Shown here: piece by piece, positions 5,496 through 25,624 of the stretch | How the letters are laid out: each line of letters opens with the position of its first letter | Position numbering within the stretch: position 1 is the first letter of the stretch | DNA from: Hyalangium minutum | GTDB taxonomy: Bacteria; Myxococcota; Myxococcia; Myxococcales; Myxococcaceae | Reading direction: 5' to 3' | Length of the DNA stretch: 64,000 nt | NCBI RefSeq assembly: GCF_000737315.1 | Contig: NZ_JMCB01000015.1 | Coordinates: 1-64,000 of the forward strand | Notes under the pieces: generated by a model | Seen by the model: the letters and a program-made list of their open reading frames with translations, nothing else | The model's database searches: none | What the model was told of the DNA's origin: nothing | Translations under genes and position numbers: made by a program

Positions 5496-5505
5496 CACCA
5501 AGAGA

Positions 5506-5590
5506 AACGGCCGGGACACACGCGAAGGTTCGCTACCGTTGCTTCCTTCCGGACCTGGCGGAGTTCACGGCCCCACGTTGTCCCGACCAC
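5506..5590 (-). ncRNA. ffs: Small bacterial SRP RNA (4.5S)
   Basis: Minus strand GTGAACTCCGCCAGGTCCGGAAGGAAGCAACGG is the helix-8 core with GGAA tetraloop; closing stem GGTCGGGACA / TGTCCCGGCC; next to dnaX as usual. Ends approximate. Confidence 0.93.
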
Positions 5591-5604
5591 AAATGTAACA
5601 CCTA

Positions 5605-5691
5605 CGGAGAGGGTGGGATTCGAACCCACGATACCCTTTCAGGTATGCACGCGTTCCAGGCGTGTGCCTTCAACCGCTCGGCCACCTCTCC
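5605..5691 (-). tRNA. tRNA-Ser(GGA)
   Basis: GGAGAGG acceptor stem, anticodon arm CACGC-CT-GGA-AC-GCGTG, long variable arm, GGTTCGAATCC T-arm; no encoded CCA. Confidence 0.97.
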
Positions 5692-5708
5692 AAGGACCTG
5701 CCAACAAG

Positions 5709-5795
5709 CGGAGAGCGTAGGATTCGAACCTACGGTACCGTTCCCGGTACGCCTGATTTCGAGTCAGGTGCCTTCGACCACTCGGCCAGCTCTCC
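5709..5795 (-). tRNA. tRNA-Ser(CGA)
   Basis: Anticodon arm CCTGA-CT-CGA-AA-TCAGG, long variable arm, GGTTCGAATCC; no encoded CCA. Confidence 0.97.
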
Positions 5796-5800
5796 AGTAT

Positions 5801-6268
5801 TCACTTTTCACGCTTCTTGTCGCGCAACCGCTCGAAGAAGCCTTTGAGAAGCAGGCGGCTCTCGTCCGCCAGAATGCCACTTGTCACCTGGAGCCGATGG
5901 TTGTGCCGGGGCTCTTCGGCGAGGTTGTAGAGCGAACCGACCGCTCCTGCCTTCGGGTCCATCGTCCCGAACACCAGCCGGGTGACCCGCCCCTGCACCA
6001 ACGCACCCGCGCACATGGCGCACGGCTCCAGCGTGACGTACAGGGTGACCCCGGTGAGCCGCCACGCCCCGAGCGCCTTGGCCGCCGCATCCAGCGCGAG
6101 CAGCTCGGCATGAGCCAGGGGGTTGCGATCCACCTCGCGGCGATTGAAGCCGGTGCCAATGACGTTGCCGCCATGCACCGCCACCGCTCCGACGGGGACC
6201 TCTCCGAGTGCCGCCGCTTCCCGCGCCAGCGCAAGCGCCTGCTGCATGAAAGCTTCGTCGTCACTCAT
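5801..6268 (-). CDS. tadA: tRNA adenosine(34) deaminase
   Basis: GEVPVGAV, AHAE and TLYVTLEPCAMCAGA motifs. Confidence 0.95.
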   Translation of the reverse strand: MSDDEAFMQQALALAREAAALGEVPVGAVAVHGGNVIGTGFNRREVDRNPLAHAELLALDAAAKALGAWRLTGVTLYVTLEPCAMCAGALVQGRVTRLVFGTMDPKAGAVGSLYNLAEEPRHNHRLQVTSGILADESRLLLKGFFERLRDKKREK

Positions 6269-6292
6269 GGAGAGAAGCTGCGTGGAGGGGTG

Positions 6293-6366
6293 CGCTCCCT
6301 GGAGGATTCGAACCTCCGGCCTTCGGATTCGTAGTCCGACGCTCTATCCAGCTGAGCTAAGGGAGC
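6293..6366 (-). tRNA. tRNA-Arg(ACG)
   Basis: GCTCCCT/AGGGAGC acceptor stem, anticodon arm TCGGA-CT-ACG-AA-TCCGA, GGTTCGAATCC. Confidence 0.97.
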
Positions 6367-6395
6367 ATTCCGTCCAACGCGGCTACAACGATAAG

Positions 6396-6485
6396 TGGCG
6401 GAGAGAGAGGGATTCGAACCCTCGATACCGTTTCCAGTATGCAGGTTTAGCAAACCTGTGCCTTCAGCCTCTCGGCCATCTCTCC
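6396..6485 (-). tRNA. tRNA-Ser(GCT)
   Basis: Anticodon arm CAGGT-TT-GCT-AA-ACCTG, long variable arm, encoded 3' CCA. Confidence 0.97.
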
Positions 6486-6529
6486 AACGTTTCTCTGTCA
6501 AAGAACTGCGTAAGACAAGAACAAAGTTT

Positions 6530-6616
6530 CGGAGGAAGTAGGATTCGAACCTACGGAGAGCTTTCACCCTCTGCGGTTTTCAAGACCGCTGCCTTCAGCC
6601 GCTCGGCCATTCCTCC
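6530..6616 (-). tRNA. tRNA-Ser(TGA)
   Basis: Anticodon arm GCGGT-CT-TGA-AA-ACCGC, long variable arm, GGTTCGAATCC. Confidence 0.97.
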
Positions 6617-6656
6617 ACAGCTTGCCGCGCGGCCCGCCACGCTGCGCGGGGCCGCC

Positions 6657-6697: not shown

Positions 6698-12273
<5,576 letters not shown>

Positions 12274-12501
12274 GGTGTTCCTTCAGAGACCTGCTGGCGC
12301 AACCGCCCGCGGACGGGCTGGATCCTCTCGCCGCGAGCGCGCACGCTATCAGAGGCGTTTCCGGAGCGGAAAGAACGCGAACAGGCGGGCTCTCGCCACC
12401 CCTGGAGCCCAGGCAAGGGGGCAGGGGGCTGTCCGGCCGTGGCACTCCGAGTCCACGAGAGCCCCCCACCCCCATACCGGAGGTGGTAGACCCTGGTGAG
12501 C

Positions 12502-13818
12502 ATGGAGCCCACCATCATCCTGGGAGCGGGGCTGGCGGGCCTGTCCGCCGCCCACTTTCTGCAGCGCCCCTGGCATCTGATCGAGAAGACGGACCGGGCC
12601 GGAGGCCTGATCAAGACCGAGGTCATCGACGGGTGCTACTTCGACCCGACCGGGCACTGGCTGCACCTCCGGGATCCCGAAATCCGGGAACGGGTGAATA
12701 CCCTGTGGCTGCCTGGCCAGCTGGTGAGCATCCAGCGCAAGGCGGGCATCTTCTCGCGGGGCGTCTTCACCCGCTTCCCGTACCAGGTGAACACCCACGG
12801 GCTGCCGCCGGAGGTGGTGGCCGAGAACCTGATGGGCTTCGTGGAGGCTCTCTATGGAGAGAAGGGCCGCGAGCTGCGCGAGCGCGATCCCCGCAACTTC
12901 GAGGAGTTCATCCTCCGCTACATGGGCGAGGGCTTCGCGAAGAACTTCATGGTGCCCTACAACCAGAAGCTCTGGACGGTGCACCCCCGGGAGCTGTCGG
13001 CGGCGTGGGTGGGGCGCTTCGTGCCTCGGCCCACGCTCAAGGAAGTGGTGGATGGGGCGCTCGGCGTGGGCAGTGATGCGCTCGGCTACAACGCCTCGTT
13101 CCTCTACCCGCGCGAGGGCGGCATCGAGAGCCTGGCCCGCGCCATGCTCCGCCACCTCAAGGGCGGCGAGGTGAGCGTCCGCACCGAGCCCACCGCCATC
13201 GACTGGAAGGCTCGGAAGGTGGTGCTCTCGGATGGGCGGACGCTCGGCTATTCGGAGCTGCTCTCGACCGTGTCCCTGCCGCACCTGGTGGGGCTGCTGG
13301 CCCGAGGCGCCTCCGGGGTTCCGGACGAGGTCCGTGCCGCCGCGGGCCGCCTGCGCGCCACCACCGTTACTTATGTCTGCGTGGCGGCCCGAGGGAAGAA
13401 CCGCCAGCCCTGGCACTGGATCTATCTGCCGGAGTTGGAGTTCAAGACGTACCGCATTGGCTCGCCGTCCGCCGTGTATGCGCCGCTGGCGCCTCCGGAC
13501 ACCTCCACCTTCTATGTGGAGTACAGCCACCACGGCGAGCTGTCCCCCGCCCAGTGCGAGCAGCACGCGGTGGCGGATCTGGTTCGCTCGCAGATGATCC
13601 ACTCGGCGGACGAGGTGCTCTTCGCCCGGGCCCGGGAGATTCCCCACGCGTACGTCCTCTATGACGAGGCGTATGGCCCGGCGAAGGCGGAGATCCTCCG
13701 CTTCCTGGAGCACGCCCGCATCCTGACGGCGGGTCGCTACGGGCAGTGGGAGTACTCCTCCATGGAGGACGCCATCCTGGGCGGCCGGGCCAGTGCTCGC
13801 GTGCTCAACGCACGCTGA
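12502..13818 (+). CDS. FAD-dependent oxidoreductase, UDP-galactopyranose mutase / protoporphyrinogen oxidase-like
   Basis: GAGLAGL, GGLIKT..GCYFDPTGHWLH, PYNQKLW, FLYPREGG and AGRYGQWEYSSME motifs. Confidence 0.75.
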   Translation: MEPTIILGAGLAGLSAAHFLQRPWHLIEKTDRAGGLIKTEVIDGCYFDPTGHWLHLRDPEIRERVNTLWLPGQLVSIQRKAGIFSRGVFTRFPYQVNTHGLPPEVVAENLMGFVEALYGEKGRELRERDPRNFEEFILRYMGEGFAKNFMVPYNQKLWTVHPRELSAAWVGRFVPRPTLKEVVDGALGVGSDALGYNASFLYPREGGIESLARAMLRHLKGGEVSVRTEPTAIDWKARKVVLSDGRTLGYSELLSTVSLPHLVGLLARGASGVPDEVRAAAGRLRATTVTYVCVAARGKNRQPWHWIYLPELEFKTYRIGSPSAVYAPLAPPDTSTFYVEYSHHGELSPAQCEQHAVADLVRSQMIHSADEVLFARAREIPHAYVLYDEAYGPAKAEILRFLEHARILTAGRYGQWEYSSMEDAILGGRASARVLNAR

Positions 13819-13904
13819 GTCCCGGGCGATGACTGTTGTCGACGGTCACCGGCGGGCGTGGTACGCCGTGGGCTCCTACCGTCGACGCGCGTCCGCTCTC
13901 GAAT

Positions 13905-14618
13905 ATGGCCGCCCCGTACCTCTCCATCGTCATCCCCGTCTACAACGAGGAGTCCATCATCGCCGAGGCTGCGGCCGAGTTGTGCCAGGGCTTGGACGCG
14001 CACGGGTGGGACTACGAGGTCATCTTCGCGGAGAACGGCTCGCGCGACGCCACGCCTCAGCTCCTCGAGCGGATGTGCGCCGAGAACCCGCGTCTGCACT
14101 GGTTCCACTCGGAGCGGCCCAACTACGGCGCGGCGCTCAAGGCCGGCATCCTCAAGGCCCGGGGCACCTATGTGGTGTGCGATGAGATCGACCTGTGCGA
14201 TTTGACCTTCTACTCCGCCGCACTGCCCCGGCTGGAGCGGGGCGAGGCGGACATGGTCGTCGGCTCCAAGGCCGCCAAGGGCGCCAGTGACCAGCGGCCC
14301 ATCATCCGGCGCGTGGCCACCCGGGTGCACAACAAGCTGCTGAAGGTGACGCTGGGCTTCCGGGGCACCGACACGCACGGCCTCAAGGCGTTCCGGCGCA
14401 AGGCGCTCATGCCCGTCATTGCCAAGTGCGTGGTGGACATGGATGTGTTCGCCAGCGAGTTCGTCATCCGCGCCTGGCGCGAGGGCCTGAAGGTGATGGA
14501 GATCCCCATCCAGCTCCACGAGAAGCGCCAGCCCTCGGTTCACCTCTTCAAGCGCGTCCCCAACGTGCTGAAGAACGTGGGCAAGCTCGTCTACGTCATC
14601 CGCATCCGAGGCACCTGA
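13905..14618 (+). CDS. GT2 glycosyltransferase (polyprenol/dolichyl-phosphate hexose synthase-like)
   Basis: SIVIPVYNEE, ENGSRDAT, NYGAALKAG, DTHGLKAFR; DxD position reads DEID. Confidence 0.85.
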   Translation: MAAPYLSIVIPVYNEESIIAEAAAELCQGLDAHGWDYEVIFAENGSRDATPQLLERMCAENPRLHWFHSERPNYGAALKAGILKARGTYVVCDEIDLCDLTFYSAALPRLERGEADMVVGSKAAKGASDQRPIIRRVATRVHNKLLKVTLGFRGTDTHGLKAFRRKALMPVIAKCVVDMDVFASEFVIRAWREGLKVMEIPIQLHEKRQPSVHLFKRVPNVLKNVGKLVYVIRIRGT

Positions 14619-14628
14619 GAGGCGCGCC

Positions 14629-15570
14629 GTGGCTCTCCGGCTGGCGTGCATCTCCGTCGACCTGGATTCGCTGCACCACTACTGCCGCATCCACGGTCTG
14701 CCCGAGTCCGTGCTGGACGCGCGTGCCCGAGGGCTCGTGTACTCCACCGCCGTGCCGCGCTTCCGGGAGCTGCTCCGGTCCGTGGGTGCGCCCGGGACGT
14801 TCTTTGCCATCGGGGAAGATCTGGCAGACGCCCGGTCCGCCGAGGCGCTTCGGGACGCCCACCGCGCGGGCATCGAGGTGGGAAACCACAGCTACTCGCA
14901 CGACTACGCGCTCACCCGGCGCGCTCCCGAGTCCATCCGCGAGGAACTGGTCCGGGGCGAGGAGGCCATCCTCGCCGCCACGGGCACCCGGCCCGTCGGC
15001 TTCCGCGCTCCCGGCTACACGCTCAATGCCGCCCTCTACGCAGCCACGGCCGAGCGTGGCTACCTCTATGGCTCGTCCACCTTCCCGGCCGCGCCGTACT
15101 ACGCAGCCAAGGCCGCGGTGATGGGCGCGCTGGCGCTGGCGGGGCGTCCGTCGCGTTCGATATTGGACAGTCCCCGGGTGCTGCTGGCGCCTCGCACGCC
15201 GTACCGGCCGGACCCTTCGCAGCCCTACCGGCGGGGCACCGGGCCGGTGTTGGAGCTGCCCATGGCGGTAACGCCGGGCGTGCGCCTGCCCTTCATCGGC
15301 ACCTTCGTGGCGACGCTGCCCCTGCCCGCCGTTCACGCCGCGTGGCACGCGTGCCGCCGTGACACACTCTTCAACTTCGAGCTCCACGCCGTGGACGTGC
15401 TCGATGCCAACGATGGGATTCCTCCGCAACTGGTCCGCCAGCAGCGCGACTTGCGCGTGTCCTCGACCCGGAAGATGGAGCGGCTCGCGGCCATCTTCCG
15501 CTGGCTGAAGGAGGACGCGGACCTGGTCACCCTCCGTGTGGCCGCCGAGCGGCTTGCTCCCACCGTCTGA
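14629..15570 (+). CDS. Polysaccharide deacetylase (CE4/NodB-like)
   Basis: SVDLD, TFFAIG, EVGNHSYSH, GFRAPGY, FELHAVD motifs; GTG start. Confidence 0.85.
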   Translation: MALRLACISVDLDSLHHYCRIHGLPESVLDARARGLVYSTAVPRFRELLRSVGAPGTFFAIGEDLADARSAEALRDAHRAGIEVGNHSYSHDYALTRRAPESIREELVRGEEAILAATGTRPVGFRAPGYTLNAALYAATAERGYLYGSSTFPAAPYYAAKAAVMGALALAGRPSRSILDSPRVLLAPRTPYRPDPSQPYRRGTGPVLELPMAVTPGVRLPFIGTFVATLPLPAVHAAWHACRRDTLFNFELHAVDVLDANDGIPPQLVRQQRDLRVSSTRKMERLAAIFRWLKEDADLVTLRVAAERLAPTV

Positions 15571-15579
15571 GGCGACGGC

Positions 15580-16278
15580 TCAGCGCGGCGTCTCCGGCGC
15601 CCTGAGCACGTCCGCCACCGCTTCGAGCACACGGGAGTCATCGCGCATCCAGTGATGCAGGAGCACGAAGAAGGTGCGGTCGTGGGCGCCAGGCAGCCGC
15701 GCGCTGGTGGCCGGGACGACAATCATGTCCAGCGGCGTCCAGAAGGTATGAACCTCCACTTTGCCGAAAGGGTGGGGGTTCCGGTTGAGCGCCCGCAGGA
15801 GCGGGCTCCTCGGCCGCATCTGCTTCACCCCCAGCCCCGGGTGCACGTAGGCCATCATCGTCCCCGCCTGGGGCCCGGAGATGGAGACGAAGCGGCGCAC
15901 CTCCTCCTTGCCGCCCTCCATCTGCAGCCAGAAGCGCGTCACCAGCGCCCCCATGCTGAACGCCACCACGTCGATTCGAGCAGCCCCCGTCTCCGCACGC
16001 AGGGCCTCGGCCGCCTGTCCTACCTGCTGGGCCATGTCCGGCACGCTCAGGCTTCCGTTATTGGGCTCCAGCGCGGCCACCCGCACCACGGGCCAGCCGG
16101 CCTGCTCCAGGTACTGCTTCATCGGCTCCAGGCCGAGTGGGGTGTCGTGGAGGCCGTGGACGAGCAGCACCGGCAGCGGGGACGACGCCTGGGACGTGTG
16201 GGTGGGAGCGCGCACCGAGGGCCCCGTCGCACACCCTCCGGCGAGCCACCCCAGCAGCAGCAGCACCTGGAAACGCAT
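15580..16278 (-). CDS. Lipoprotein lipase/esterase (alpha/beta hydrolase)
   Basis: Lipobox LAGGC, VLLVHGL oxyanion motif, nucleophile elbow AFSMG, D..V and H near the C-terminus. ATG at 16278; ORF-track extension is spurious. Confidence 0.8.
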   Translation of the reverse strand: MRFQVLLLLGWLAGGCATGPSVRAPTHTSQASSPLPVLLVHGLHDTPLGLEPMKQYLEQAGWPVVRVAALEPNNGSLSVPDMAQQVGQAAEALRAETGAARIDVVAFSMGALVTRFWLQMEGGKEEVRRFVSISGPQAGTMMAYVHPGLGVKQMRPRSPLLRALNRNPHPFGKVEVHTFWTPLDMIVVPATSARLPGAHDRTFFVLLHHWMRDDSRVLEAVADVLRAPETPR

Positions 16279-16323
16279 GCACGCATGATGCGCCCTCTCC
16301 ACTGGGTGGTGTAAAGAGCCCCC

Positions 16324-17178
16324 ATGTTCGAGGCGCTTGGCGACAAGGTCCGGCAGCGGCTCAAGGGCTGGACGGAGCAGATGGCGGGCCAGGAGCGCAA
16401 GGAGCAGCTCCAGGCACTCACGCGGACGGAGAACGAGTACGGGGTGGACCCCTTCGGGTTCAACCTCGACTTCAGCCTCGCGGCGGCGGCGCCTCTGCTC
16501 TGGCTCTACCGCAAGTACTTCCGCGTGGAGACCTACGGCATCGAGAAGGTTCCCCGTGGCCGCGTCCTCCTCATCTCCAACCACTCAGGCCAGCTCCCCC
16601 TGGATGGCGCGATGATCTGCGTGGCCATGATGATGGAGGCCTCGCCCCCCCGCGCCGTTCGCAGCATGGTGGAGAAGTGGGTGCCCACCCTGCCGTATAT
16701 CTCCACGCTGTTCGCCCGCGTGGGGCAGATCGTCGGCACCCCGGAGAACTGCCGGCGCCTGCTGGAGTCCGACGAGGCCATCCTCGTCTTCCCCGAGGGC
16801 GCTCGCGGCATCTCCAAGCTGTGGCCCCAGCGCTACCAGCTCCAGGAGTTCGGTCTGGGCTTCATGCGCCTGGCCCTGGAGACGAACACGCCCATCGTCC
16901 CCGTGGCTGTCATCGGCGCCGAGGAGCAGGCCCCCGCGCTGCTGGACATCAAGCCCGTGGCCAAGCTGCTCGGGTTCCCCTCCTTCCCCGTCACGCCCAC
17001 CGGGCTGCCCTTCCCGCTGCCCACCAAGTACCGCCTCTACTTCGGAGATCCGCTGTACTTCACCGGCCGCCCGGATGATGAGGACTCCGAGCTGGACAAG
17101 AAGGTGCGCACCGTGAAGACCGCCATCCAGGGGATGATTCACCAGGGACTCAAGGAACGCCGGGGCATCTTCTGGTGA
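16324..17178 (+). CDS. Lysophospholipid/glycerolipid acyltransferase (PlsC family)
   Basis: NHSGQLPLD (HX4-5D), LVFPEG, PIVPVAVIG motifs. Confidence 0.9.
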   Translation: MFEALGDKVRQRLKGWTEQMAGQERKEQLQALTRTENEYGVDPFGFNLDFSLAAAAPLLWLYRKYFRVETYGIEKVPRGRVLLISNHSGQLPLDGAMICVAMMMEASPPRAVRSMVEKWVPTLPYISTLFARVGQIVGTPENCRRLLESDEAILVFPEGARGISKLWPQRYQLQEFGLGFMRLALETNTPIVPVAVIGAEEQAPALLDIKPVAKLLGFPSFPVTPTGLPFPLPTKYRLYFGDPLYFTGRPDDEDSELDKKVRTVKTAIQGMIHQGLKERRGIFW

Positions 17179-17209
17179 GCGCGGCGCAACGTTCGAGGAG
17201 GGGGGCTCC

Positions 17210-18133
17210 ATGAGACCGGCCGTCGTCGTCACAGGCATCAGCGGCAACCTGGGCCGCGCGCTCGCCAAGCAGCTCCACAAGACCGAGCGCATCATCGGCA
17301 TCGACCGGCGCCCCTTCGTGGGCCGGCCGAAGGACGTCGAGATGTATCAGCTCGACCTCCGTAAGAAGAAGGCGGAGGACGTCTTCCGGAAGAACGAGGT
17401 CGGCGCCGTCATCCACATGGGCATCATGCACGACCCGCGCATGAGCGAGGAGGAGCACCACTCCTTCAATGTGGTGGGCACCACGCGCCTGCTCGAGTAC
17501 TGCGCCAAGTACGGCGTGAAGAAGGTGGTCGTCCTCTCCTCGGCCAACGTCTACGGCCCCAGCCCGGACAACTCCAACTTCCTCACGGAAGACGCGCCGC
17601 TCATGGCCGCCAGCCGCTTCTCCGGCGTGAGAGATCTCATCGAAGTGGACATGCTCGCCCACGGCTTCTTCTGGCGGCACCCGGACATCAACACCGTCAT
17701 CCTCCGCCCCGTCCACATCGTCGGGCCCACCATCAAGAACGCTCCCTCCAACTACTTTCGGCTGCGCCGCCCGTGGACGCTGGCGGGGTTCGACCCCATG
17801 GTGCAGCTCATCCACGTGGACGACGTGTCGCGCGCCATGATGGAGGCCCTCCGCCCCGAGCTGAAGGGCGTCTACAACGTCACCGGCCCCGGCGAGGTGC
17901 CGCTGTCCACCGTGCACCGCGAGCTGGGCCATACCGCCATCCCCGTGCCGCACCCCGTCGCCCGGCCGCTGCTCGGCCTGCTCTTCAAGTACCGGCTGGC
18001 CAGCTTTCCGCCCCCCGAGCTGGACCACATCCAGTTCCTCTGCAACGTGGACGGCTCTCGCTGGCTGAAGGAGGCCGGCTGGAAGCCCCGCTACTCCATG
18101 CGCGAGACCATCCGGTCCGTGCTCGGCGAGTAG
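17210..18133 (+). CDS. NAD-dependent epimerase/dehydratase (extended SDR)
   Basis: VVVTGISGNLG, NVVGT, SSANVYG, QLIHVDDV, YNVTG; canonical YxxxK not evident (VRDLIEVD). Confidence 0.85.
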   Translation: MRPAVVVTGISGNLGRALAKQLHKTERIIGIDRRPFVGRPKDVEMYQLDLRKKKAEDVFRKNEVGAVIHMGIMHDPRMSEEEHHSFNVVGTTRLLEYCAKYGVKKVVVLSSANVYGPSPDNSNFLTEDAPLMAASRFSGVRDLIEVDMLAHGFFWRHPDINTVILRPVHIVGPTIKNAPSNYFRLRRPWTLAGFDPMVQLIHVDDVSRAMMEALRPELKGVYNVTGPGEVPLSTVHRELGHTAIPVPHPVARPLLGLLFKYRLASFPPPELDHIQFLCNVDGSRWLKEAGWKPRYSMRETIRSVLGE

Positions 18134-18138
18134 AGGAG

Positions 18139-18166
18139 GGCCCTGACAGTCGTGTCAGGGCCTTTT
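18139..18166 (+). terminator. Hairpin + T4 after the SDR gene (may double as enhancer dyad)
   Basis: GGCCCTGACA-GTCG-TGTCAGGGCC-TTTT, 5 nt after the SDR stop. Confidence 0.65.
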
Positions 18167-18202
18167 GGCCGGGGAAGCCCGAGGGGCCTGACACCCGTGT
18201 CG
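18144..18202. promoter_or_regulatory. Two TGACA-N4-TGTC(A/G) dyads, putative bEBP enhancer sites
   Basis: TGACAGTCGTGTCA at 18144-18157 and TGACACCCGTGTCG at 18189-18202, 90-145 bp upstream of a sigma54 box. Confidence 0.5.
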
Positions 18203-18247
18203 TGTCTTGGGCCGCGCTGGCATGGCTCTGGGTGCCGGGTTTCCGCG

Positions 18248-18260
18248 CAAGGGCTTGATT
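18248..18260 (-). promoter_or_regulatory. IHF consensus site
   Basis: Minus strand AATCAA-GCCC-TTG matches WATCAANNNNTTR exactly; lies between the dyads and the -24 box. Confidence 0.6.
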
Positions 18261-18289
18261 TTACTCGGAACCTGCTGGAATCCAGGCCC

Positions 18290-18305
18290 TGGCACCGGCC
18301 TTGCT
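18290..18305 (+). promoter_or_regulatory. sigma54 -24/-12 promoter
   Basis: TGGCAC-CGGCC-TTGCT is a perfect TGGCAC-N5-TTGCW match. Confidence 0.8.
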
Positions 18306-18315
18306 CTTAGGGAGG

Positions 18316-18394
18316 GCATGGATAGGGGGTTCCATAGGGGAACCTTCGACGCCCGTCGTCTCGGCCGGCCCCGAGTCGACGGGCGGTTTTTTTT
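18316..18394 (+). ncRNA. Candidate sigma54-dependent small RNA (~80 nt)
   Basis: Between convergent genes; preceded by the sigma54 box; stem-loop GGTTCC-ATAGG-GGAACC, then a long hairpin ending in T8. Start inferred from -12 spacing. Confidence 0.6.
18350..18394 (+). terminator. Strong intrinsic terminator on the + strand
   Basis: CGCCCGTCG..CTCGG-loop-CCGAG..CGACGGGCG-G-TTTTTTTT. Confidence 0.85.
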
Positions 18395-18820
18395 CTACGG
18401 CAGCTCGCCCGCGAAGGGCCCGTCGAGCATCCGCTCCAGCTGCCACGTCTTCTCCTGCTGCACGTAGAGGTACTCCTCGGTGACCGTGGCGGTCTGCTCC
18501 GAGGGCGACGGCAGGCGCATCCACTGCAGCCGCGTCGTCACGAAGGCCCGCATCCCATCCGCCGTCAGCTGGGCGTCGAGCACCTCGAAGTCGGAGATCG
18601 TCAAATCCCGCTCGTCGTGAAGCTCCGCCCGGGCCCGCAGGAAAGCCTCGCGACGCTCTGGCACCAGGTGCCGGGCCGCTCCCCGGAAGTCCTTCCAGCG
18701 GATGCGCTTGTGGAAGTCCTCCACCACCGGACGCAACCCCTCCAGTCCGGTACTTTGAGGCGTGTGGGCGCAGGCCCCACCCAGCAGGGCCATCAGGAGC
18801 ACAAGGACGAACGAGCGCAT
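18395..18820 (-). CDS. Hypothetical lipoprotein (141 aa, NTF2-like fold possible)
   Basis: Signal/lipobox MRSFVLVLLMALLGGAC; ATG at 18820. Confidence 0.75.
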   Translation of the reverse strand: MRSFVLVLLMALLGGACAHTPQSTGLEGLRPVVEDFHKRIRWKDFRGAARHLVPERREAFLRARAELHDERDLTISDFEVLDAQLTADGMRAFVTTRLQWMRLPSPSEQTATVTEEYLYVQQEKTWQLERMLDGPFAGELP

Positions 18821-18914
18821 GCTGGTAGGCAACGGTAGCACCCGGAAAGGGCCCCACAAGTAGATCCAGTGCTATCGTCCGGGTCCTGCCTGCGCACCGG
18901 AGTTCCGAACATCC

Positions 18915-21900
18915 ATGGCCAAGTCGATGGTGGAGAGGTACGAGCAGCTGCTGCTGCAAGACCCCACATCCGCGGTTTTCGTCGAGCTCGCCAAAGCCCT
19001 CCTTGAGAAGAGCGAGCATGCTCGCGCGATCGAGGTGTGCCAAAGAGGTCTCGGCCACCACCCCAACTCCGTCATCGGACGGGTGCTGTGGGGCAAGTCG
19101 CTGCTGCACCAGGGCAAGCCTGCCGAGGCGATGGAGCAGTTTGATCAGGCCATTGCCGTCGATAAGGAGAACGCCCACGCCTACAACCTGATCGGTGAGG
19201 TGCTGGTGCAGCGAGGGCTGTTCCGCTCCGCGCTCCCCATTCTGCGCAAGGCCGCCGCGCTGCAACCCAATGATGGGCGGGTCCGTTTGTGGCTGGAGCA
19301 GACCCAGCAGGCCCTGTCGGGAGGGCCCGCCCCGGTGGTGGCGGAGCTTCCTGGCATCACGGCCCACGAGCTCGAGCCGAAGCCCTTCGAGGAGGCGGCG
19401 CCGCCTCCGCCTCCGACTCCGCCTCAGGAGGCCGCGCCGCCTCCGCCGCCCGAGCCGGAGTCCGAGGCGTCCGAGGGCTCCGCGCCTCCGCCGCCGCCCG
19501 AGTCCTGGGATGACGGTGAGCGGGACGACATCACCCGGCAGTTCAGCACCATCAAGGTGGAGCAGTTCCCGGGCGAGGAGCCCCCGGCGCGTCCAGCGAC
19601 GGATGACGAGATCACCACGCCTGGACAGGTCACTCCCTCGCGAGGTCCGGTCAAGGTCTACATGTTCCCGCCTCGCAAGGCCGCGAAGCCGCCGCCTCCT
19701 CCAGAGGAGGAGGATCTCGCGGACACGCCGCCTCCCTTCGCTGCGCGGCGTGAGGAGTATGACGAAGACACGCCGGTGCCGAGCGCGGAGGACAGCGAGG
19801 CCCCTGAAGAGCGTGCGGCGAGTGGGGGAGGGCTGCTCCCGGATGTGGATGGACCGGAGGCCCGCGAGGAGGACGACTCTGGACAGGCGCCCCCTGCCGA
19901 TACCGAGTCTGAGTCCTTGTCCACGGGTGTGATGAGTGCCGCCGACTCTGGAGGAGGCGGTGGGCTCCTGGGCGATCTGCCGCCTCCTGAAGAGGAGGAG
20001 CTGGCTGCGGTTCCCGCGGCCGCCCGTGTCTCCGCCACCGCGAAGACTTCGTCGCCGAGCCGTTCTCGGTCCTCCGCTGGAGGCTCCGCGAAGCGCGCGC
20101 TCCTGGATGACATCCCCGAGGCCGTCGAGCCGAAGGTGACGACGGGCTCGGCTCGCGCCAGGTCCGCGGCCCAGGTAGACGCCGCCGAGGCCGCCGCGGC
20201 CTACGAGAAGGAGCTGCGCGACAAGCTCGCCAAGAGCGCCGCGAATCCCTCCTTCCTCCAGCGCTATGGCCTGAAGCTCGCCGTGGGTGGTGTGCTGGCC
20301 GTGGTGCTCGGCGTGGGCCTGAGCGTGTACCTCATCCGGCGCGCGGCTCAGGGCGGACAGACGCTCACCGAGGTGCTGGAGCGGACCGATCGCGCCATCT
20401 CCCAGGACACCCGCAACGACTTCCAGAACGCGCTCGCGATGATCGAGCGGGCGCAGGAGATGGACGACGACAACCCCAAGGCCCTGGCGCTGAAGGCGTA
20501 TACGTACGCGCTGCTCTTCGCCGACCACGGTGGGAAGATCGAGGACCGGCAGCAGGCGCTCGCGGCGATGGAGCTGCCGGGGGTGAAGGATTCGCACCCG
20601 GGGCTGGCCCTCGCCACGGACGTGTTGGTGGCCGACGACAAGGCGCGCTCCACGGCTCGCGCCGCGCTGCTGTCCTCCACGGATGACTCCACCGAGCGCC
20701 ACGCGCTCGCGGGCACGGTGTTGCTGGAGGACAAGCAGCCGGAGAAGGCGCTGGAGCACTTCAAGCGCGCCCTGGAGGTCTCCGGCCGCAATGTGCGCGC
20801 GCTCGTCGCGCTGGGCCAGTACTACCAGGACTTCGACGACTACCCGAACGCCATCAAGGTCTACGGCACGGCGCAGGAGCTCTCTCCGGAGCACCCGCTG
20901 GCGCGCATTGGCATGGCCGAGAGCCGGCTCGCCCTGGGGCAGGAGCTGAACGAGGCGCTCGCGGACATGCAGGCGCTGAGCGCGGACACGTCCTTGCCCG
21001 AGGCCCTGCACGGCCGGCAGCAGCTCATTCACGGGCGGCTCCTGGCCAGCCTGGGCAAGCCGGACGAGGCCCTGCCGCTGCTGGAGGCCGGCTCCAAGGG
21101 CCAGGGCCCGCTCGTCTTCGACTTCCTGCTCGCGCTGGGTGAGGCGAGCCGCGCCTCGGGCAAGCTGCCCAAGGCCCAGGAGGCCTACGAGGCCGCCCTG
21201 AAGATGCAGCCCAAGAGCGAGGCCGCGATGGAGGGCCTGGGCCGGGCGCTGCTGGATCGCGATCGCGTGAAGGAAGTGCTCGACAAGCTGGGCAAGGCCG
21301 AGGGGCGCCGGCTGTCGCTGGTGCGCGCGGCGGCCTACGCGCGGCAGGAGGACTGGAAGCGCGTCCGCTCGGAGCTGGAGAAGACGCGGGTGAACGACCG
21401 CTACGTGCCCGAGGCCATCGGCTACATGGCCATGGCGGACTCGGCGGACGGCAACGGCGAGCAGGCCCGCGAGGTGCTGGAGAAGGCGACGAAGACCTCC
21501 AAGCAGCCCCGCACGGATCTCCGCGTCGCGCTGGGGCGCGTGTACTGGCGGCTGGGCGCGATGGACAAGGCGCGCGCCGAGCTCGAGGAGGCCATGAAGG
21601 ATCCCCGGGACTACGAGGCCGCCTGCTCGCTGGGCCGGCTGCTGCTCGCGCGGGGCCTGCCGGACCTGGCGCTCGCGCCGCTCACGCGGGCCGTGGAGCG
21701 CAACGGCTTCCACGGAGAGGCGCGGGATGCGCTCGGCCGGGCGCTGCTGGCCATGGGGCGCACGGACGAGGGCTTCAAGCAGTTCACGGCCTGGAAGGAC
21801 GACAACCCCGAGAGCTCCGAGGCCCAGAAGGGCTATGCCCTGGCGCTCTGGCGCTCGGGCCAGTTCGCGCAGGCCGCGGAGGTGCTGCGCGGGGTGAAGG

Positions 21901-22610
21901 TCGGCGCGAACGACGCGGCGGGGCACCGCCTGCGTGCGGTCATCTTGTTCGCCTTGGGGGATAGCAAGGGCGCGACCAAGTCCCTGGAGCTCGCCGCCAA
22001 GAACAGCTCCAGCGATCCGGAGACGTTCTGTGAGATCGCCCACCTCTACCTCCGCAACGCCAAGACCGAAGAGGCTGCGGGGGCCTTCGAGAAGGTCCGG
22101 GCGGATTCGCCCGACACGCTCTGCGGCCAGGTGGGCGAGTACTACGTGTACCCCGAGGACAGCGGCAAGACGGTGCCCGACACGCTGCGGAACCTGGCGA
22201 GCAAGGCGCCCACGGTCTGGGACAAGGCCTTTGCCCAGACGACGCTGGCGCGGGTGCTGCTGAGCACGTCGACGTCCTCCACCTCGCCGAACCTGAAGGC
22301 GGCCCGCGCGGCGGCGGAGGAGGCGGTGAAGCTGGATCCCTTCAACGGCCGGGCTCACCTGGCGCTGGGGCTCGTGGCGCTCCGGCAGAAGCAGGAGGAG
22401 CCCGCGGTCACCGCGCTCACCCAGGCGGTGGAGCTGGATCCGGCGCATGCCCTGGCGCACCTGTCCCTGGCGGATGCGCTCGCGCGCAAGCAGGAGACGC
22501 TGGCCCGCTCGGTTCAGGAGTATGAGACGTTCCTCAAGCTGGCCGGCACGTCGGAGGAGGCCAAGCGGGTCAAGAAGCTGCTGCCGACCCTCAAGAAGCG
22601 GGTGAAGTAG
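18915..22610 (+). CDS. Large membrane-anchored TPR protein (1231 aa)
   Basis: N-terminal TPRs, ~270-aa Pro/Glu-rich linker, TM helix (LAVGGVLAVVLGVGLSVYLI), long TPR array. Confidence 0.85.
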   Translation: MAKSMVERYEQLLLQDPTSAVFVELAKALLEKSEHARAIEVCQRGLGHHPNSVIGRVLWGKSLLHQGKPAEAMEQFDQAIAVDKENAHAYNLIGEVLVQRGLFRSALPILRKAAALQPNDGRVRLWLEQTQQALSGGPAPVVAELPGITAHELEPKPFEEAAPPPPPTPPQEAAPPPPPEPESEASEGSAPPPPPESWDDGERDDITRQFSTIKVEQFPGEEPPARPATDDEITTPGQVTPSRGPVKVYMFPPRKAAKPPPPPEEEDLADTPPPFAARREEYDEDTPVPSAEDSEAPEERAASGGGLLPDVDGPEAREEDDSGQAPPADTESESLSTGVMSAADSGGGGGLLGDLPPPEEEELAAVPAAARVSATAKTSSPSRSRSSAGGSAKRALLDDIPEAVEPKVTTGSARARSAAQVDAAEAAAAYEKELRDKLAKSAANPSFLQRYGLKLAVGGVLAVVLGVGLSVYLIRRAAQGGQTLTEVLERTDRAISQDTRNDFQNALAMIERAQEMDDDNPKALALKAYTYALLFADHGGKIEDRQQALAAMELPGVKDSHPGLALATDVLVADDKARSTARAALLSSTDDSTERHALAGTVLLEDKQPEKALEHFKRALEVSGRNVRALVALGQYYQDFDDYPNAIKVYGTAQELSPEHPLARIGMAESRLALGQELNEALADMQALSADTSLPEALHGRQQLIHGRLLASLGKPDEALPLLEAGSKGQGPLVFDFLLALGEASRASGKLPKAQEAYEAALKMQPKSEAAMEGLGRALLDRDRVKEVLDKLGKAEGRRLSLVRAAAYARQEDWKRVRSELEKTRVNDRYVPEAIGYMAMADSADGNGEQAREVLEKATKTSKQPRTDLRVALGRVYWRLGAMDKARAELEEAMKDPRDYEAACSLGRLLLARGLPDLALAPLTRAVERNGFHGEARDALGRALLAMGRTDEGFKQFTAWKDDNPESSEAQKGYALALWRSGQFAQAAEVLRGVKVGANDAAGHRLRAVILFALGDSKGATKSLELAAKNSSSDPETFCEIAHLYLRNAKTEEAAGAFEKVRADSPDTLCGQVGEYYVYPEDSGKTVPDTLRNLASKAPTVWDKAFAQTTLARVLLSTSTSSTSPNLKAARAAAEEAVKLDPFNGRAHLALGLVALRQKQEEPAVTALTQAVELDPAHALAHLSLADALARKQETLARSVQEYETFLKLAGTSEEAKRVKKLLPTLKKRVK

Positions 22611-22611
22611 C

Positions 22612-23010
22612 GTGGAGACGCCTTCCGATTCAGAGCAGCGGCAGCCGACGTACCCGCTCCTGCGCATCATGGGGAGCAACGCCTTCCTGCTCTCCGTCAT
22701 CTACCTCATCCTGGGCATCTCCGTGGAGGCGGTGCGGCGCGTCTACCCGACGCGCTTCGTCCAGCGGCTGTCGCTGTCGCTGGACTCGCTGCCTGCGCGC
22801 GCGCTGGAGTTCCTGGGGTGGATGGAGCCCCTGCGTGCGAAGTACCTCAACGGGCAGATCCCCGACTACCAGGTGCGCCTCATCTTCGGCGTTACCACGG
22901 TGGTCATCATCTTCCTGCTGGCGTTCGCGGTGGGGCTGCTCGTGGGCAGCCTGCGCGGCTACATGGAGCGCCGCGCCCTGAAGAAGCACTCCCAGCGCCG
23001 CCCCGGATAA
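22612..23010 (+). CDS. Hypothetical membrane protein (2 TM)
   Basis: GTG 1 nt after the TPR stop; two hydrophobic helices; coding-like codon bias. Confidence 0.75.
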   Translation: METPSDSEQRQPTYPLLRIMGSNAFLLSVIYLILGISVEAVRRVYPTRFVQRLSLSLDSLPARALEFLGWMEPLRAKYLNGQIPDYQVRLIFGVTTVVIIFLLAFAVGLLVGSLRGYMERRALKKHSQRRPG

Positions 23011-23032: not shown

Positions 23033-25567
23033 TCAGCCGATCTGCAGCTCGGCGATCTTGTGCTTCTTGTCGCTGATCAGATCCATCAGCTTGCCGAAGC
23101 CGAAGGCGAGCAGGCCGATCCCCGCGCCCACCGCCATGCCGAGCGGGCCTCCGATGGCTCCCACCGCGATGGCCCCGCCAATGCCTCCGGCGATGCCCAC
23201 CGCGCCCTTGGCGATCTGCGCCCCGTCCTTGTCCTTGGCCCCGTTGACGATGTCCATGATGCCCAGGCCGGTGCTCGCCGCCGCGCCGGCCACGTTCGCG
23301 AAGCCGCCCATGGCCTTGAGCGCGCCCAGCGCTTTGGCGCCCATCTGGGCCGCGCTGCCCGCCACCTTGCCCAGGCCGCCCATGCCCTTCACGGAGTCGA
23401 AGATGGCGGAGGTGACGGCCGAGCCCACCTTGGGATTGCTCAGCGTCTTGGCCCAGTTGCCCAGGCCCTTGGACACGGTGCCCGTGGCGTCCGTGGCGGT
23501 GTCCCCCACGCCCTTGATGGCGCTCTGGAAGGTCTTGCCACCGTCATAGATGTTCTTCAGGCCTAGGCCCGTGTCGAACAGGCCCTTGAAGATCTCCGGC
23601 ACGTTGTGGTTCCGGATGCCCTCGGCGAGCTGGAGCCCACCGGCCACCGCGCCCGCCACGCCCGCCAGTGCTCCCGTGCCGCCCCGGGCTCCCTCCAGGC
23701 CGCGGGAGAGGGCCTCGGTGCCGAGCACCTTCGAGGCCAGGCCCGGCAGCCGCTTCGCGTCCTGGCTGAGGTCGGCCACCATCCCCACGGCGCGGGCGCC
23801 TCCGTTGTTGGCGTAGGAGTTCACCGTGTTGGCGGTGGACACGCTGGCCTGCAGGAGCAGGTTCTTGCCATCCGGGTCATCCTTCACGTTCTCCGGGTCG
23901 GTGATGTCGCGCGGGTCCTTGCCGCCGGGGCCGCTGAGCGTCATCCGCTCGCCGTTCTTTCCCGTCTCGTGGACGGCCTGCCGCCCGTCCGCGCTGGTGA
24001 CGGTGTTGCGCGAGTTCAGCAGCTGCGCCCCCTTGCCCGACAGCAGCGAGGTGTCCTCCCGCAGCGAGGTGTCCGTCTTGTTGTCCTGGGTGAGCTTAGT
24101 CTCCAGGGACTCGCTCAGCTCGAGGCCCGCGTCGGTGGGCTTGCGGGTGCTGTTGTAGCGCTGCTCCAGGGTGGAGCCGTCCGCTTGCAGCTGCTTCATG
24201 TCCATCTTCTCGATGGAACCGTCCGCCGCGTAGGTCCGCGAGCCCTGGCCATGGATGTCCACCAGCTCGCCGGCCTTCTTGGCGTCTGGCTTGAACGTCT
24301 TGCCGTGGTAGTCCTCGCGCACGGTGCTGCCCTCGCGCGTCTTGTTCGTGATGGTGGTGGCCTTGGGCGTGCCCTCGATGAACGTCTGTGTCTGCAGGCT
24401 GTTGGGATCCTTCTGGAGCTCCATCAGCCAGCGCTTGGGCGTCTTGCCCTTGTCCGTGCCGTCGTTCGCGTCATAGTCCTCGCCGCCGTGCTTGCCGTAC
24501 TCGTCGCGCACGCGGTCCGCGTCCTCGCGGTTGTGCGGGCCCTCGCCGGCGTACTTCTTGTGCCCATCCAGCTCGCGGTCCACGTACGAGGTGGCCTGGA
24601 CGTTGTCCTGGGAGAAGGACTGGGTGCGGTTGTAATGGGGGTTGCCCTGGGAGCCATCGGCACCCGGCGGAGGAATCGAGTAGGTGTAGCTGTCCGCCCG
24701 GTCCACCGGCTTCTTGTAGTCGAAGGGCTTGTCCAGCTTGTTGTCGATGCCCTTGTCGCCCTTCTGCTGGAAGTACGCGGTGCGGCTGCCGGTGATGCCG
24801 CCGTCGGCCTGGGCGTACTCGTCCACGTGCAGCCGATTGTCCTTCGTGTCCGTGTGCACCTCGTTGCTCGTGTAGAGCAGGTTCTGGTCCCGTGACTTCT
24901 CGATGTCGTCGAAGGACTTGAGGTCGGAGACCTCGTTCTTGTCGCCCTTCCACTCGGCGCGCTGGACGCGCGAGCTGCCGTCGGTGCGCATGTCCACCTT
25001 GTCGCGCTTGTTGGCGCCGTCCTCATAGCTCGCCGTGTCGAGCGTGACGGCGCCGTCCGGGCCCTTGGTGGCCACGGTGCGCTCGGCCAGCTCGCCCTTG
25101 GCGTTGCGGCGCACCAACTCGGCCTGGTTGTCAGACAGCTTCTTCACCTCCGTGCCCGAAGGAACGAAGCCCTTGCCGTCCGCCATGGCGAAGACGTCAT
25201 CCGCCTTCTTCGTGGTCTCCTCGCGCAGCTTCTTCTGGGCCTCCTCGATTTCAGTGCGCCGGTCAGCCACGGTCTTCACATCCACCTCGGCCTTGGCCTT
25301 GTCCTCGCCGGAGACACTCCGCGGGGCGACGTCCTTGGGTTGGACAGTCTGCGCCGCTGCCTTCGCGAGGGCCCCGACGGCCCCGGCCACCTTGGATGCG
25401 GCCGAGGCCTCGAAGCGGTCTCCCACCTGGGCCCGGACCACCTGCTTCGGCTCGGGGGCCTTGGCGGCGGCGGGCGCCACTGCAGGCTTCTTCTCGGCCG
25501 CTGCGGCACGCTCGAGCGAGAGGGGAGCAGGAGAGACAGGCTTCCGGGAGATGGGGGCAACAGACAT
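23033..25567 (-). CDS. Hypothetical 844-aa protein with glycine-rich hydrophobic C-terminus (candidate pore-forming effector)
   Basis: ATG at 25567 with GGAG SD; low-complexity N-terminus with GDRFEAS; hydrophilic centre; C-terminal GIAGGIGGAIAVGAIGGPLGMAVGAGIGLLAFGFG. Confidence 0.8.
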   Translation of the reverse strand: MSVAPISRKPVSPAPLSLERAAAAEKKPAVAPAAAKAPEPKQVVRAQVGDRFEASAASKVAGAVGALAKAAAQTVQPKDVAPRSVSGEDKAKAEVDVKTVADRRTEIEEAQKKLREETTKKADDVFAMADGKGFVPSGTEVKKLSDNQAELVRRNAKGELAERTVATKGPDGAVTLDTASYEDGANKRDKVDMRTDGSSRVQRAEWKGDKNEVSDLKSFDDIEKSRDQNLLYTSNEVHTDTKDNRLHVDEYAQADGGITGSRTAYFQQKGDKGIDNKLDKPFDYKKPVDRADSYTYSIPPPGADGSQGNPHYNRTQSFSQDNVQATSYVDRELDGHKKYAGEGPHNREDADRVRDEYGKHGGEDYDANDGTDKGKTPKRWLMELQKDPNSLQTQTFIEGTPKATTITNKTREGSTVREDYHGKTFKPDAKKAGELVDIHGQGSRTYAADGSIEKMDMKQLQADGSTLEQRYNSTRKPTDAGLELSESLETKLTQDNKTDTSLREDTSLLSGKGAQLLNSRNTVTSADGRQAVHETGKNGERMTLSGPGGKDPRDITDPENVKDDPDGKNLLLQASVSTANTVNSYANNGGARAVGMVADLSQDAKRLPGLASKVLGTEALSRGLEGARGGTGALAGVAGAVAGGLQLAEGIRNHNVPEIFKGLFDTGLGLKNIYDGGKTFQSAIKGVGDTATDATGTVSKGLGNWAKTLSNPKVGSAVTSAIFDSVKGMGGLGKVAGSAAQMGAKALGALKAMGGFANVAGAAASTGLGIMDIVNGAKDKDGAQIAKGAVGIAGGIGGAIAVGAIGGPLGMAVGAGIGLLAFGFGKLMDLISDKKHKIAELQIG

Positions 25568-25607
25568 GAGGGCTCCGAGGGAAGGCAGGAGGACTGCGGA
25601 GCCTCGA

Positions 25608-25624
25608 TGCGTCTGGTGTGCCAA
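25608..25624 (-). promoter_or_regulatory. Putative sigma54 promoter for the 844-aa gene
   Basis: Minus strand TTGGCAC-ACCAG-ACGCA: GG-N10-GC spacing correct, -12 TT replaced by AC; 40 nt upstream of the ATG. Confidence 0.55.

Follow-up and report, generated by a model that had tools for sequence, protein, structure and literature searches.

The intergenic stretch at 18139-18394 of a Hyalangium minutum contig lies between two convergent genes and combines, on one strand, enhancer-like dyads, a sigma-54 promoter box and a pair of hairpins that ends in a run of T residues. The question raised by this locus is whether such a promoter serves an RNA of its own and, if so, how an RNA of this size might act. 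An earlier note on this DNA had read the stretch as an independent, enhancer-dependent sigma-54 unit making a short terminated regulatory RNA. Comparison of the window, by which the whole 64,000-nt stretch analysed is meant, with related loci makes it very probable that a genuine sRNA gene, so far undescribed and switched on by a sigma-54 system, occupies this intergenic stretch. The fuller reading, according to which 18139-18394 forms a complete and independent sigma-54 unit for a non-coding RNA of ~78 nt, activated through a bEBP and DNA bending and acting as a riboregulator in trans, is considered probable.

The locus and its predicted sigma-54 promoter

The flanking genes and the elements upstream of the predicted RNA are the following:

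17210-18133, plus strand: SDR epimerase gene, the upstream flank, ending at 18133
18139-18166, plus strand: hairpin GGCCCTGACA-GTCG-TGTCAGGGCC followed by TTTT, likely terminator of the SDR epimerase gene
18144-18157, within the stem of that terminator: distal dyad TGACA-GTCG-TGTCA, ~165 nt upstream of the predicted start
18187-18204, no strand assigned: proximal enhancer-like dyad CCTGACA-CCCG-TGTCGTG (core GACA-N4-TGTC), putative bEBP site
18248-18260, minus strand: exact IHF consensus AATCAAGCCCTTG (WATCAANNNNTTR), between enhancer and promoter
18290-18305, plus strand: sigma-54 box TGGCAC-CGGCC-TTGCT, with the -24 GG and the -12 GC
18315-18317, plus strand: predicted transcription start, ~11-13 nt downstream of the -12 GC
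18395-18859, minus strand: lipoprotein-like ORF, the convergent downstream flank

When the sequence was read from 17700 to 18800, every element listed in the earlier note was found in its place, and the SDR epimerase gene (plus strand) and the lipoprotein-like ORF (minus strand) are convergent, as it had said. An exact protein match assigns the contig to JMCB01000015.1 of assembly GCA_000737315.1. One correction concerns the upstream end, where a dyad at 18144 and a hairpin with a T4 run closing the epimerase gene had been described as separate elements. Both exist, but they are a single object (18139-18166) that had been counted twice, the stem of the hairpin carrying the distal dyad.

Orthologous loci were collected with the epimerase protein as query and one genome per GTDB species, which yielded 80 loci from Hyalangium, Archangium, Corallococcus, Myxococcus, Pyxidicoccus, Citreicoccus, Vitiosangium and many Myxococcaceae MAGs. 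At nearly every locus with a long enough contig, a sigma-54 box is present downstream of the epimerase gene and is followed by the same RNA; from the DNA examined at loci L046 and L080 the RNA is absent. A metagenome search with a pattern built from the invariant RNA positions returned a further 114 stretches, 109 of them genuine and with the same synteny and five of them chance matches within coding sequence. Pooled over genomes and metagenomes, the RNA module occurs downstream of the same SDR-epimerase gene at 177 Myxococcaceae/Archangiaceae loci, and for 168 of these the sequence extends 260 nt or more upstream. The order of SDR epimerase, sRNA, convergent lipoprotein gene and TPR protein gene recurs across these families, with the SDR epimerase as the upstream gene at every locus compared, and a covariance model search found no second copy of the module in the 64-kb window. 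By this comparison, the candidate sRNA gene is single-copy and strictly syntenic across the Myxococcaceae/Archangiaceae.

The sigma-54 box of the window matches TGGCAC-N5-TTGCW exactly and remains the sole match in the 64 kb at a tolerance of one mismatch. Since chance would produce about 1.9 matches of this kind, the box by itself is within chance for a stretch of this length and not significant. Among the orthologues, however, a box with GG and GC intact is kept at 166 of the 168 loci with sufficient upstream sequence, and 153 of the same 168 carry an exact TGGCAY-N5-TTGCW. The predicted transcription start follows from the usual geometry of sigma-54 promoters, which is well established. No sigma-70-like promoter was found between 17000 and 19500.

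The proximal dyad (TGACA-CCCG-TGTC at 18189-18201) is centered ~120 nt upstream of the predicted start. Its extended form, CTGACA-N4-TGTC, has three matches in the 64-kb window against 0.11 expected, a number reached by none of 100 shuffles. Across the family, at least one GACA-N4-TGTC dyad lies within 200 nt upstream at 136 of 166 loci, compared to none of the 146 control windows placed 500-700 nt upstream; the exact dyad is absent from the other 30. The half-sites are fixed while the N4 spacer varies freely, and the offsets, counted relative to the T of TGGCAC, cluster at about -67, -88, -99/-100 and -110/-111, classes that differ by roughly whole helical turns. Such a pattern is expected of an activator site, that is, a protein site facing the promoter; bEBP sites typically lie some 80-200 bp away from the promoter they serve. 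The two dyads of the earlier note (18144 and 18189) are thus both present in the window, with family-wide presence limited to the proximal one: a second dyad 45-46 bp upstream of the proximal, again with a variable N4, is found in Hyalangium, Corallococcus, Myxococcus and Pyxidicoccus, and two dyads occur at 39/166 loci. A similar restriction applies to the IHF site that had been proposed as part of the architecture. The exact consensus stands in the window (one match, 0.14 expected in 64 kb), but an IHF-like site that agrees in orientation and position and deviates by no more than one mismatch is kept at only 34 of 70 genome loci; these all belong to the named genera, and none was seen in the deeper MAG lineages among the 70. 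A bend between enhancer and promoter, by IHF or intrinsic to the DNA, is common at sigma-54 promoters without being obligatory.

Candidates for the activator were also considered. A linked activator was rejected, as no bEBP signature (GAFTGA and related motifs) occurs anywhere in the 64-kb window, and PexR was set aside since its published M. xanthus site, CACCG-n6-CGGTG, does not match.

Structure, strand and variation of the RNA module

Downstream of the promoter, the predicted RNA contains the following features, all on the plus strand:

18321-18394, plus strand: conserved 74-nt core module, consisting of leader UAG, SL1, GA linker, terminator hairpin and U-tract
18325-18347, plus strand: SL1, a 9-bp stem (18325-18333 with 18339-18347) and a pentaloop AUAGG (18334-18338)
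18350-18385, plus strand: 14-bp bulged GC terminator hairpin, its 9-bp and 5-bp helices separated by a U/U bulge position, with the loop CCGGCC (18365-18370)
18362-18373, plus strand: terminator apex CGGCCGGCCCCG, invariant in 72/72 distinct modules
18387-18394, plus strand: U8 tract, preceded by G and completing the intrinsic terminator

The short stem-loop and the long GC hairpin followed by T8 are therefore as the earlier note had described them. Folding of 18316-18394 yields -42.8 kcal/mol with z = -4.0, and one structure accounts for 75% of the ensemble. A simple terminator scan gave no match at the terminator hairpin, probably because of its internal bulge. A small protein gene starting at an ATG at 18319 was considered and rejected, since its frame runs on through the terminator and many orthologues lack the ATG.

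An alignment of 72 distinct modules (A1; 74 columns, gap-free) was used to examine this structure. The two hairpins are paired in 95.6% of the cells, and sliding the partners by one to three columns lowers this value to 38-59%. Compensatory changes, in which both sides of a pair differ, affect 14 pairs, and none of 500 shuffles reached the observed values. They are found in six of the nine SL1 pairs and in lower-stem pairs of the terminator hairpin (e.g., 35-60, 36-59, and 41-54), whose apex pairs are invariant and for this reason cannot covary. RNAalifold independently predicts the same two hairpins, and the column pairs with the highest mutual information are helix pairs. The covariation looked for in the orthologous intergenic regions is thus present in both hairpins, and it is strand-specific: G-U pairs are frequent (e.g., nine at 6-26, nine at 10-22, and 11 at 41-54), which would read as C-A mismatches on the opposite strand. 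A covariance model built from the alignment (R1) finds one match in the window, on the plus strand, at 93.9 bits (E = 1.7e-21), as opposed to 26 bits on the minus strand, where the hairpin alone is recognized. Taken together, the G-U pairs and the model scores indicate that the selected molecule is the predicted plus-strand RNA. The joint conservation of promoter and hairpins in related genomes, which the earlier note had named as decisive for its proposal, held at ~170 loci, and by comparison of sequences the promoter, the enhancer, the RNA structure, its strand and its conservation can be regarded as established.

Conservation is strongest in the loops. The SL1 loop follows the consensus AU-N-GG closed by a C-G pair, in which A, U and the first G never change, the second G hardly does, and the middle base is almost random (entropy 1.79 bits); no pseudoknot or tertiary covariation with this variable base was seen. 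The apex CGG-CCGGCC-CCG never varies across the 72 modules, and the linker together with the base of the terminator helix (CGACGCCC ... GGGCG) is nearly invariant. In total, 28 columns of the module alignment are invariant, covering the loops and the adjacent stem pairs. These patterns do not agree with the part of the earlier proposal that concerned G-rich single strands. The AUGGA of the 5' leader is conserved among close relatives only, and what is conserved without being paired is instead the AUNGG loop, together with the CCGGCC apex, which is C-rich. If the RNA bound C-rich targets by way of AUGGA and AUAGGGG, it would consequently rely on motifs other than the conserved ones, the most invariant unpaired stretch being itself C-rich. 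The suggested titration of a GGA-binding protein fares no better, as GGA shows no conservation among the unpaired bases and occurs in the module only inside the SL1 stem, at no fixed position.

The Hyalangium minutum window represents the commonest and minimal form of the family, with the promoter, a leader of ~10 nt and one module, a spacing found at ~110 of 166 loci. In Hyalangium versicolor, Corallococcus, Myxococcus and others, a further hairpin is inserted on the 5' side, its loop resembling GGGCCNGGAA. In Myxococcus and Pyxidicoccus, two to three complete modules are arranged in tandem, repeating every 71 nt; each of them keeps every invariant position, and the internal modules have weaker U-tracts.

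Proposed mode of action and alternatives

The proposed mechanism follows the established sigma-54 paradigm, from which bEBP binding, DNA bending and the start site are taken. Sigma-54 RNA polymerase would sit as a closed complex on TGGCAC-N5-TTGCT, while an unlinked bEBP would bind the GACA-N4-TGTC dyad ~120 nt upstream of the start and, in this genome, possibly also the one at ~165 nt. A bend in the DNA between enhancer and promoter, here presumably at the exact IHF consensus, would deliver the bEBP to the polymerase. Transcription would then start near 18316 and stop at the GC hairpin and U8 tract at 18394, giving a product composed of a short leader, a 9-bp hairpin with the AU-N-GG pentaloop, and the terminator hairpin with its invariant apex. 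That this RNA is transcribed, and what it does, are matters of inference.

With respect to its action, the favored though tentative reading, for which the chances are judged slightly less than even, is that of a trans-acting, Hfq-independent riboregulator, with the two invariant hairpin loops as the points of contact with its partners. C-rich apical loops are the usual pairing surface of Hfq-independent sRNAs, and the C-rich terminator apex would be the likeliest surface for pairing with G-rich ribosome-binding regions. M. xanthus has been reported to lack Hfq and yet to show sRNA-mRNA pairs near SD sequences (preprint 10.1101/2025.09.11.675593). Several points speak against base pairing: the invariant sequence is not confined to the loops but reaches into the stems, a pentaloop with a hypervariable middle base would be unusual for a seed, and CCGGCC would have thousands of complements in a genome of ~70% G+C.

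The chief rival is a decoy, in which the same sigma-54-driven RNA would titrate an RNA-binding protein in the manner of GlmY, CrcZ or RsmZ. Each module would offer two sequence-specific hairpins, and the added modules of Myxococcus would raise the capacity. This possibility is considered less likely, although it has to be taken seriously. It would account for the 28 invariant columns over loops and adjacent stem pairs, which exceed the needs of a pairing seed, for the nearly random base between a fixed AU and a fixed GG, as found in loops read by proteins, and for the duplication of whole modules two to three times with all invariant positions kept. Moreover, protein sponges are known among the sigma-54-dependent sRNAs, GlmY and CrcZ being examples. 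On the other hand, the loop motif differs from the A(N)GGA of CsrA/RsmA, a module has just two hairpins and most genera carry a single module, and tandem duplication is also known from the base-pairing sRNAs NrsZ and PrrF1/2. A more far-reaching version, which must be called speculative and somewhat less likely again, envisages a dedicated, family-wide titration platform. Here, the hairpin pair, whose palindromic CCGGCC apex could also permit loop-loop dimerisation, would bind a myxobacterial RNA-binding protein in a Csr/GlmY-like, sigma-54-gated circuit of bacteria without Hfq. In Myxococcus, tandem amplification would adjust the number of modules, and the circuit would govern a programme of social behavior or of the cell envelope.

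Readings that deny the RNA a role in trans are harder to reconcile with the comparison. The locus could serve the two convergent genes mainly in cis, as a terminator-insulator that both share or that works in both directions, or by regulating in antisense the 3' end of the lipoprotein mRNA, which would read into the element. The lipoprotein-like ORF indeed ends directly at the U-tract, with its stop codon at 18395-18397 on the minus strand. Read from that strand, the hairpin can still form, but it is preceded by an A-tract and lacks a following U-tract, so that lipoprotein transcripts could extend antisense to the sRNA. A purely cis-acting role is nevertheless improbable. The RNA, promoter and enhancer persist at loci where the lipoprotein gene was not found (e.g., L058, L060, L109, L123, L159, L175, and L187); furthermore, termination needs neither SL1 with its invariant loop nor an enhancer-dependent promoter of its own, and the G-U pairs show selection on the plus-strand RNA. 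Alternatively, the module could be a leader or attenuator, driven by sigma-54, that regulates the downstream TPR-protein gene by read-through of the hairpin. This is suggested by L058 and L060, where ~45 nt separate the module from the start codon of the TPR gene, which has the same orientation, and where the U-tract is weaker (GGTTTGTTTG). In the window and at most loci, however, a convergent gene of ~460 bp intervenes and the terminator has T8. Even in L058 and L060, the TPR start is closely preceded by a conserved TGnTAnnnT -10-like element, and the leader was dropped as an explanation on the ground that the TPR gene keeps this element of its own; it is regarded as very improbable. Finally, there might be no RNA at all but a chance assembly of motifs, or a site acting at the DNA level such as a protein-bound palindrome. 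The sigma-54 box alone does not exceed chance for 64 kb, and GGCCGGCC is a DNA palindrome, but promoter, enhancer, hairpins and U-tract are conserved jointly at ~170 loci, and the compensatory and G-U changes are strand-specific. The hairpin is also off-center relative to the palindrome, which makes the conserved apex asymmetric as DNA, and this last explanation appears scarcely credible.

A trans-acting RNA of this kind would be of interest in several respects. Myxobacteria carry roughly 50 sigma-54 activators, the direct targets of which are mostly unknown, and the GACA-N4-TGTC site provides a handle for finding the activator and its signal. As a second sigma-54-dependent myxobacterial sRNA, the RNA would be directly testable by M. 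xanthus genetics, and it would offer a handle on Hfq-independent post-transcriptional control. The series from one to three modules represents a natural experiment in sRNA evolution, and the RNA would add a new family to the RNA databases.

Relation to known small RNAs

In the papers covered by full-text search, no description of the RNA or its sequence was found, nor any functionally characterised myxobacterial sRNA besides Pxr. The RNA may have been detected earlier as an anonymous transcript, for example among the candidate M. xanthus sRNAs obtained by TRIC-seq, which include MXnc1 and candidates near MXAN_RS24205 or MXAN_RS10995 (10.1101/2025.09.11.675593); by full-text search, these two locus tags are used in no other paper found. 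The earlier note had proposed a search of Rfam. In Rfam 15, which includes GlmY/GlmZ, Qrr, CrcZ and RsmY/Z, no family matched the window region at its gathering threshold, and the M. xanthus orthologue gave the same outcome. At E <= 10, the sole match was RF02870 ncS035 (Burkholderia sRNA 35), with 22.2 bits and E = 0.0044 in a search of 451 nt, compared to a gathering score of 79. This match spans the GC-rich terminator hairpin and the U-tract and skips 41 and 28 model positions; it is a generic terminator resemblance and not homology. The claim that the sRNA is undescribed is in keeping with these searches. By its promoter, the predicted RNA belongs with the sigma-54-dependent bacterial sRNAs.

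Within the myxobacteria, the obvious comparison is Pxr, an sRNA of M. xanthus and other Cystobacterineae. It is encoded between genes, has a predicted sigma-54 promoter, an upstream enhancer region and several stem-loops, and carries a segment conserved in sequence in its terminator-like last stem (PMC5684412). The pxr gene lies directly downstream of the regulator genes pxrK/pxrR (nla19) and its RNA forms three stem-loops (PMC5684412), and pxr paralogues are present in Cystobacter (PMC5568312). Both RNAs are accordingly myxobacterial and intergenic, with a sigma-54 promoter and enhancer and an expansion of copy number in some genera. They differ in that Pxr has three hairpins in 108 nt and the present RNA two in ~78 nt, and in their upstream genes, which are pxrK/pxrR in one case and the SDR epimerase in the other, where the 64 kb contain no bEBP signature. 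When positions 13-33 and 48-111 of the ancestral Pxr allele, as published (PMC5568312), were aligned locally, the result was no better than with shuffles, and the 64-kb window contains no Pxr fragment at three or fewer mismatches. The predicted RNA is hence distinct from Pxr, identity being ruled out on both sequence and locus.

The remaining sigma-54-dependent sRNAs show resemblances of a more formal kind. Qrr of Vibrio and CrcZ of Pseudomonas are short terminated RNAs made only from bEBP-activated sigma-54 promoters and act globally in trans, Qrr by Hfq-dependent pairing and CrcZ as a titrator of protein that sequesters Hfq. The example cited here for Vibrio is Qrr1, which is sigma-54-driven (PMC10162802). 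The present RNA resembles these neither in sequence nor in structure and has no Rfam matches, and M. xanthus is reported to lack Hfq. The sRNAs that titrate CsrA/RsmA expose several unpaired A(N)GGA motifs in hairpin loops, whereas the loop seen here is AU-N-GG closed by C-G. In the Enterobacteriaceae, GlmY/GlmZ combine a sigma-54 promoter and an IHF site with upstream sites of the form TGTC-N10-GACA for GlrR, a bEBP of the response-regulator type, and one of the two works by protein mimicry. The window shares the TGTC/GACA half-sites and the layout of sigma-54 box and IHF consensus, but the half-sites are reversed and closer (GACA-N4-TGTC), the Rfam models do not match even at E <= 10, no overlapping sigma-70 promoter was found and no link to glmS was seen. 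NrsZ of Pseudomonas aeruginosa, an NtrC/sigma-54-dependent sRNA composed of tandem similar stem-loop modules, resembles the arrays of two to three modules in Myxococcus and Pyxidicoccus; it has no sequence relation to them, and the version in the window comprises a single module. The closest systems are therefore Pxr in biology, NrsZ in architecture, and GlmY/GlmZ in promoter layout.

Gene context of the predicted sRNA

The predicted sigma-54-driven sRNA (18316-18394, plus strand) lies at the end of an envelope-type gene run, the last member of which encodes an SDR epimerase. As checked across the orthologous loci, the position of the epimerase gene adjoining the sRNA is kept family-wide. At two epimerase loci (L046 and L080), neither the module, i.e., the conserved sRNA core, nor the promoter was found in the flanking DNA retrieved, and the sRNA could have been lost from these MAG lineages or moved elsewhere. 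The features of the window referred to here are as follows:

5501-6617, minus strand: SRP RNA and a tRNA cluster comprising tRNA-Ser (gga, cga, gct, tga) and tRNA-Arg (acg)
8068-12273, minus strand: TPR protein 1 (1401 aa) with an N-terminal zinc ribbon, tandem proline-rich peptide repeats and then a long TPR region
12496-18133: gene run encoding an amine-oxidase-like flavoprotein, a GT2 glycosyltransferase, a polysaccharide deacetylase, a lipase/thioesterase-like hydrolase, a PlsC-type acyltransferase and the SDR epimerase
18915-22610, plus strand: TPR protein 2 (1231 aa), conserved downstream neighbor of the sRNA

The tRNA cluster, which follows an SRP RNA and contains four tRNA-Ser genes and one tRNA-Arg gene, is flanked by a GcvT/DAO-type dehydrogenase gene and dnaX on one side and by serS on the other. 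The seryl-tRNA synthetase gene adjoins all four tRNA-Ser genes. Two further ORFs with coding-like GC3, of 134 aa (22606-23010, plus strand) and 863 aa (23033-25624, minus strand), showed no Pfam match at E <= 0.001.

TPR proteins and -10-like elements

The two large TPR proteins encoded in the window are similar in architecture. A conserved TGnTAnnnT, which resembles an extended -10 element, is located at about 18868-18880, near the start codon of the conserved neighbor, and at the orthologous positions. In Archangium, only about 12 nt separate this element from the TPR start codon, a spacing at which the mRNA would be leaderless or carry a very short leader. A similar sequence, TGCTACCGT, is located upstream of the ATG of the lipoprotein-like ORF.

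Additional hairpins and tandem modules

Many genera carry an additional 5' hairpin between promoter and module (L001:5105-5190, L007, L017, L022:5135-5180 and others), which is absent from the window. Its arms vary by genus while pairing, judged by eye, is still kept, and its loop resembles GGGCCNGGAA.

In Myxococcus and Pyxidicoccus loci, the 71-nt module occurs in two or three tandem copies:

L022:5131-5328: tandem module array of M. xanthus AM003
L009, L019, L023, L025, L034-L036, L039, L041, L043, L126, L141, L181: further tandem-module loci

An N run within the array of Pyxidicoccus sp. 3LFB2 (L026:about 5260-5410) suggests assembly collapse at the repeat, and module copy numbers read from draft genomes may therefore be underestimates. 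The U-tracts of internal copies are weakened (GGUUUCUUGU). According to MFE folding, the arms of neighboring terminator hairpins are predicted to pair alternatively.
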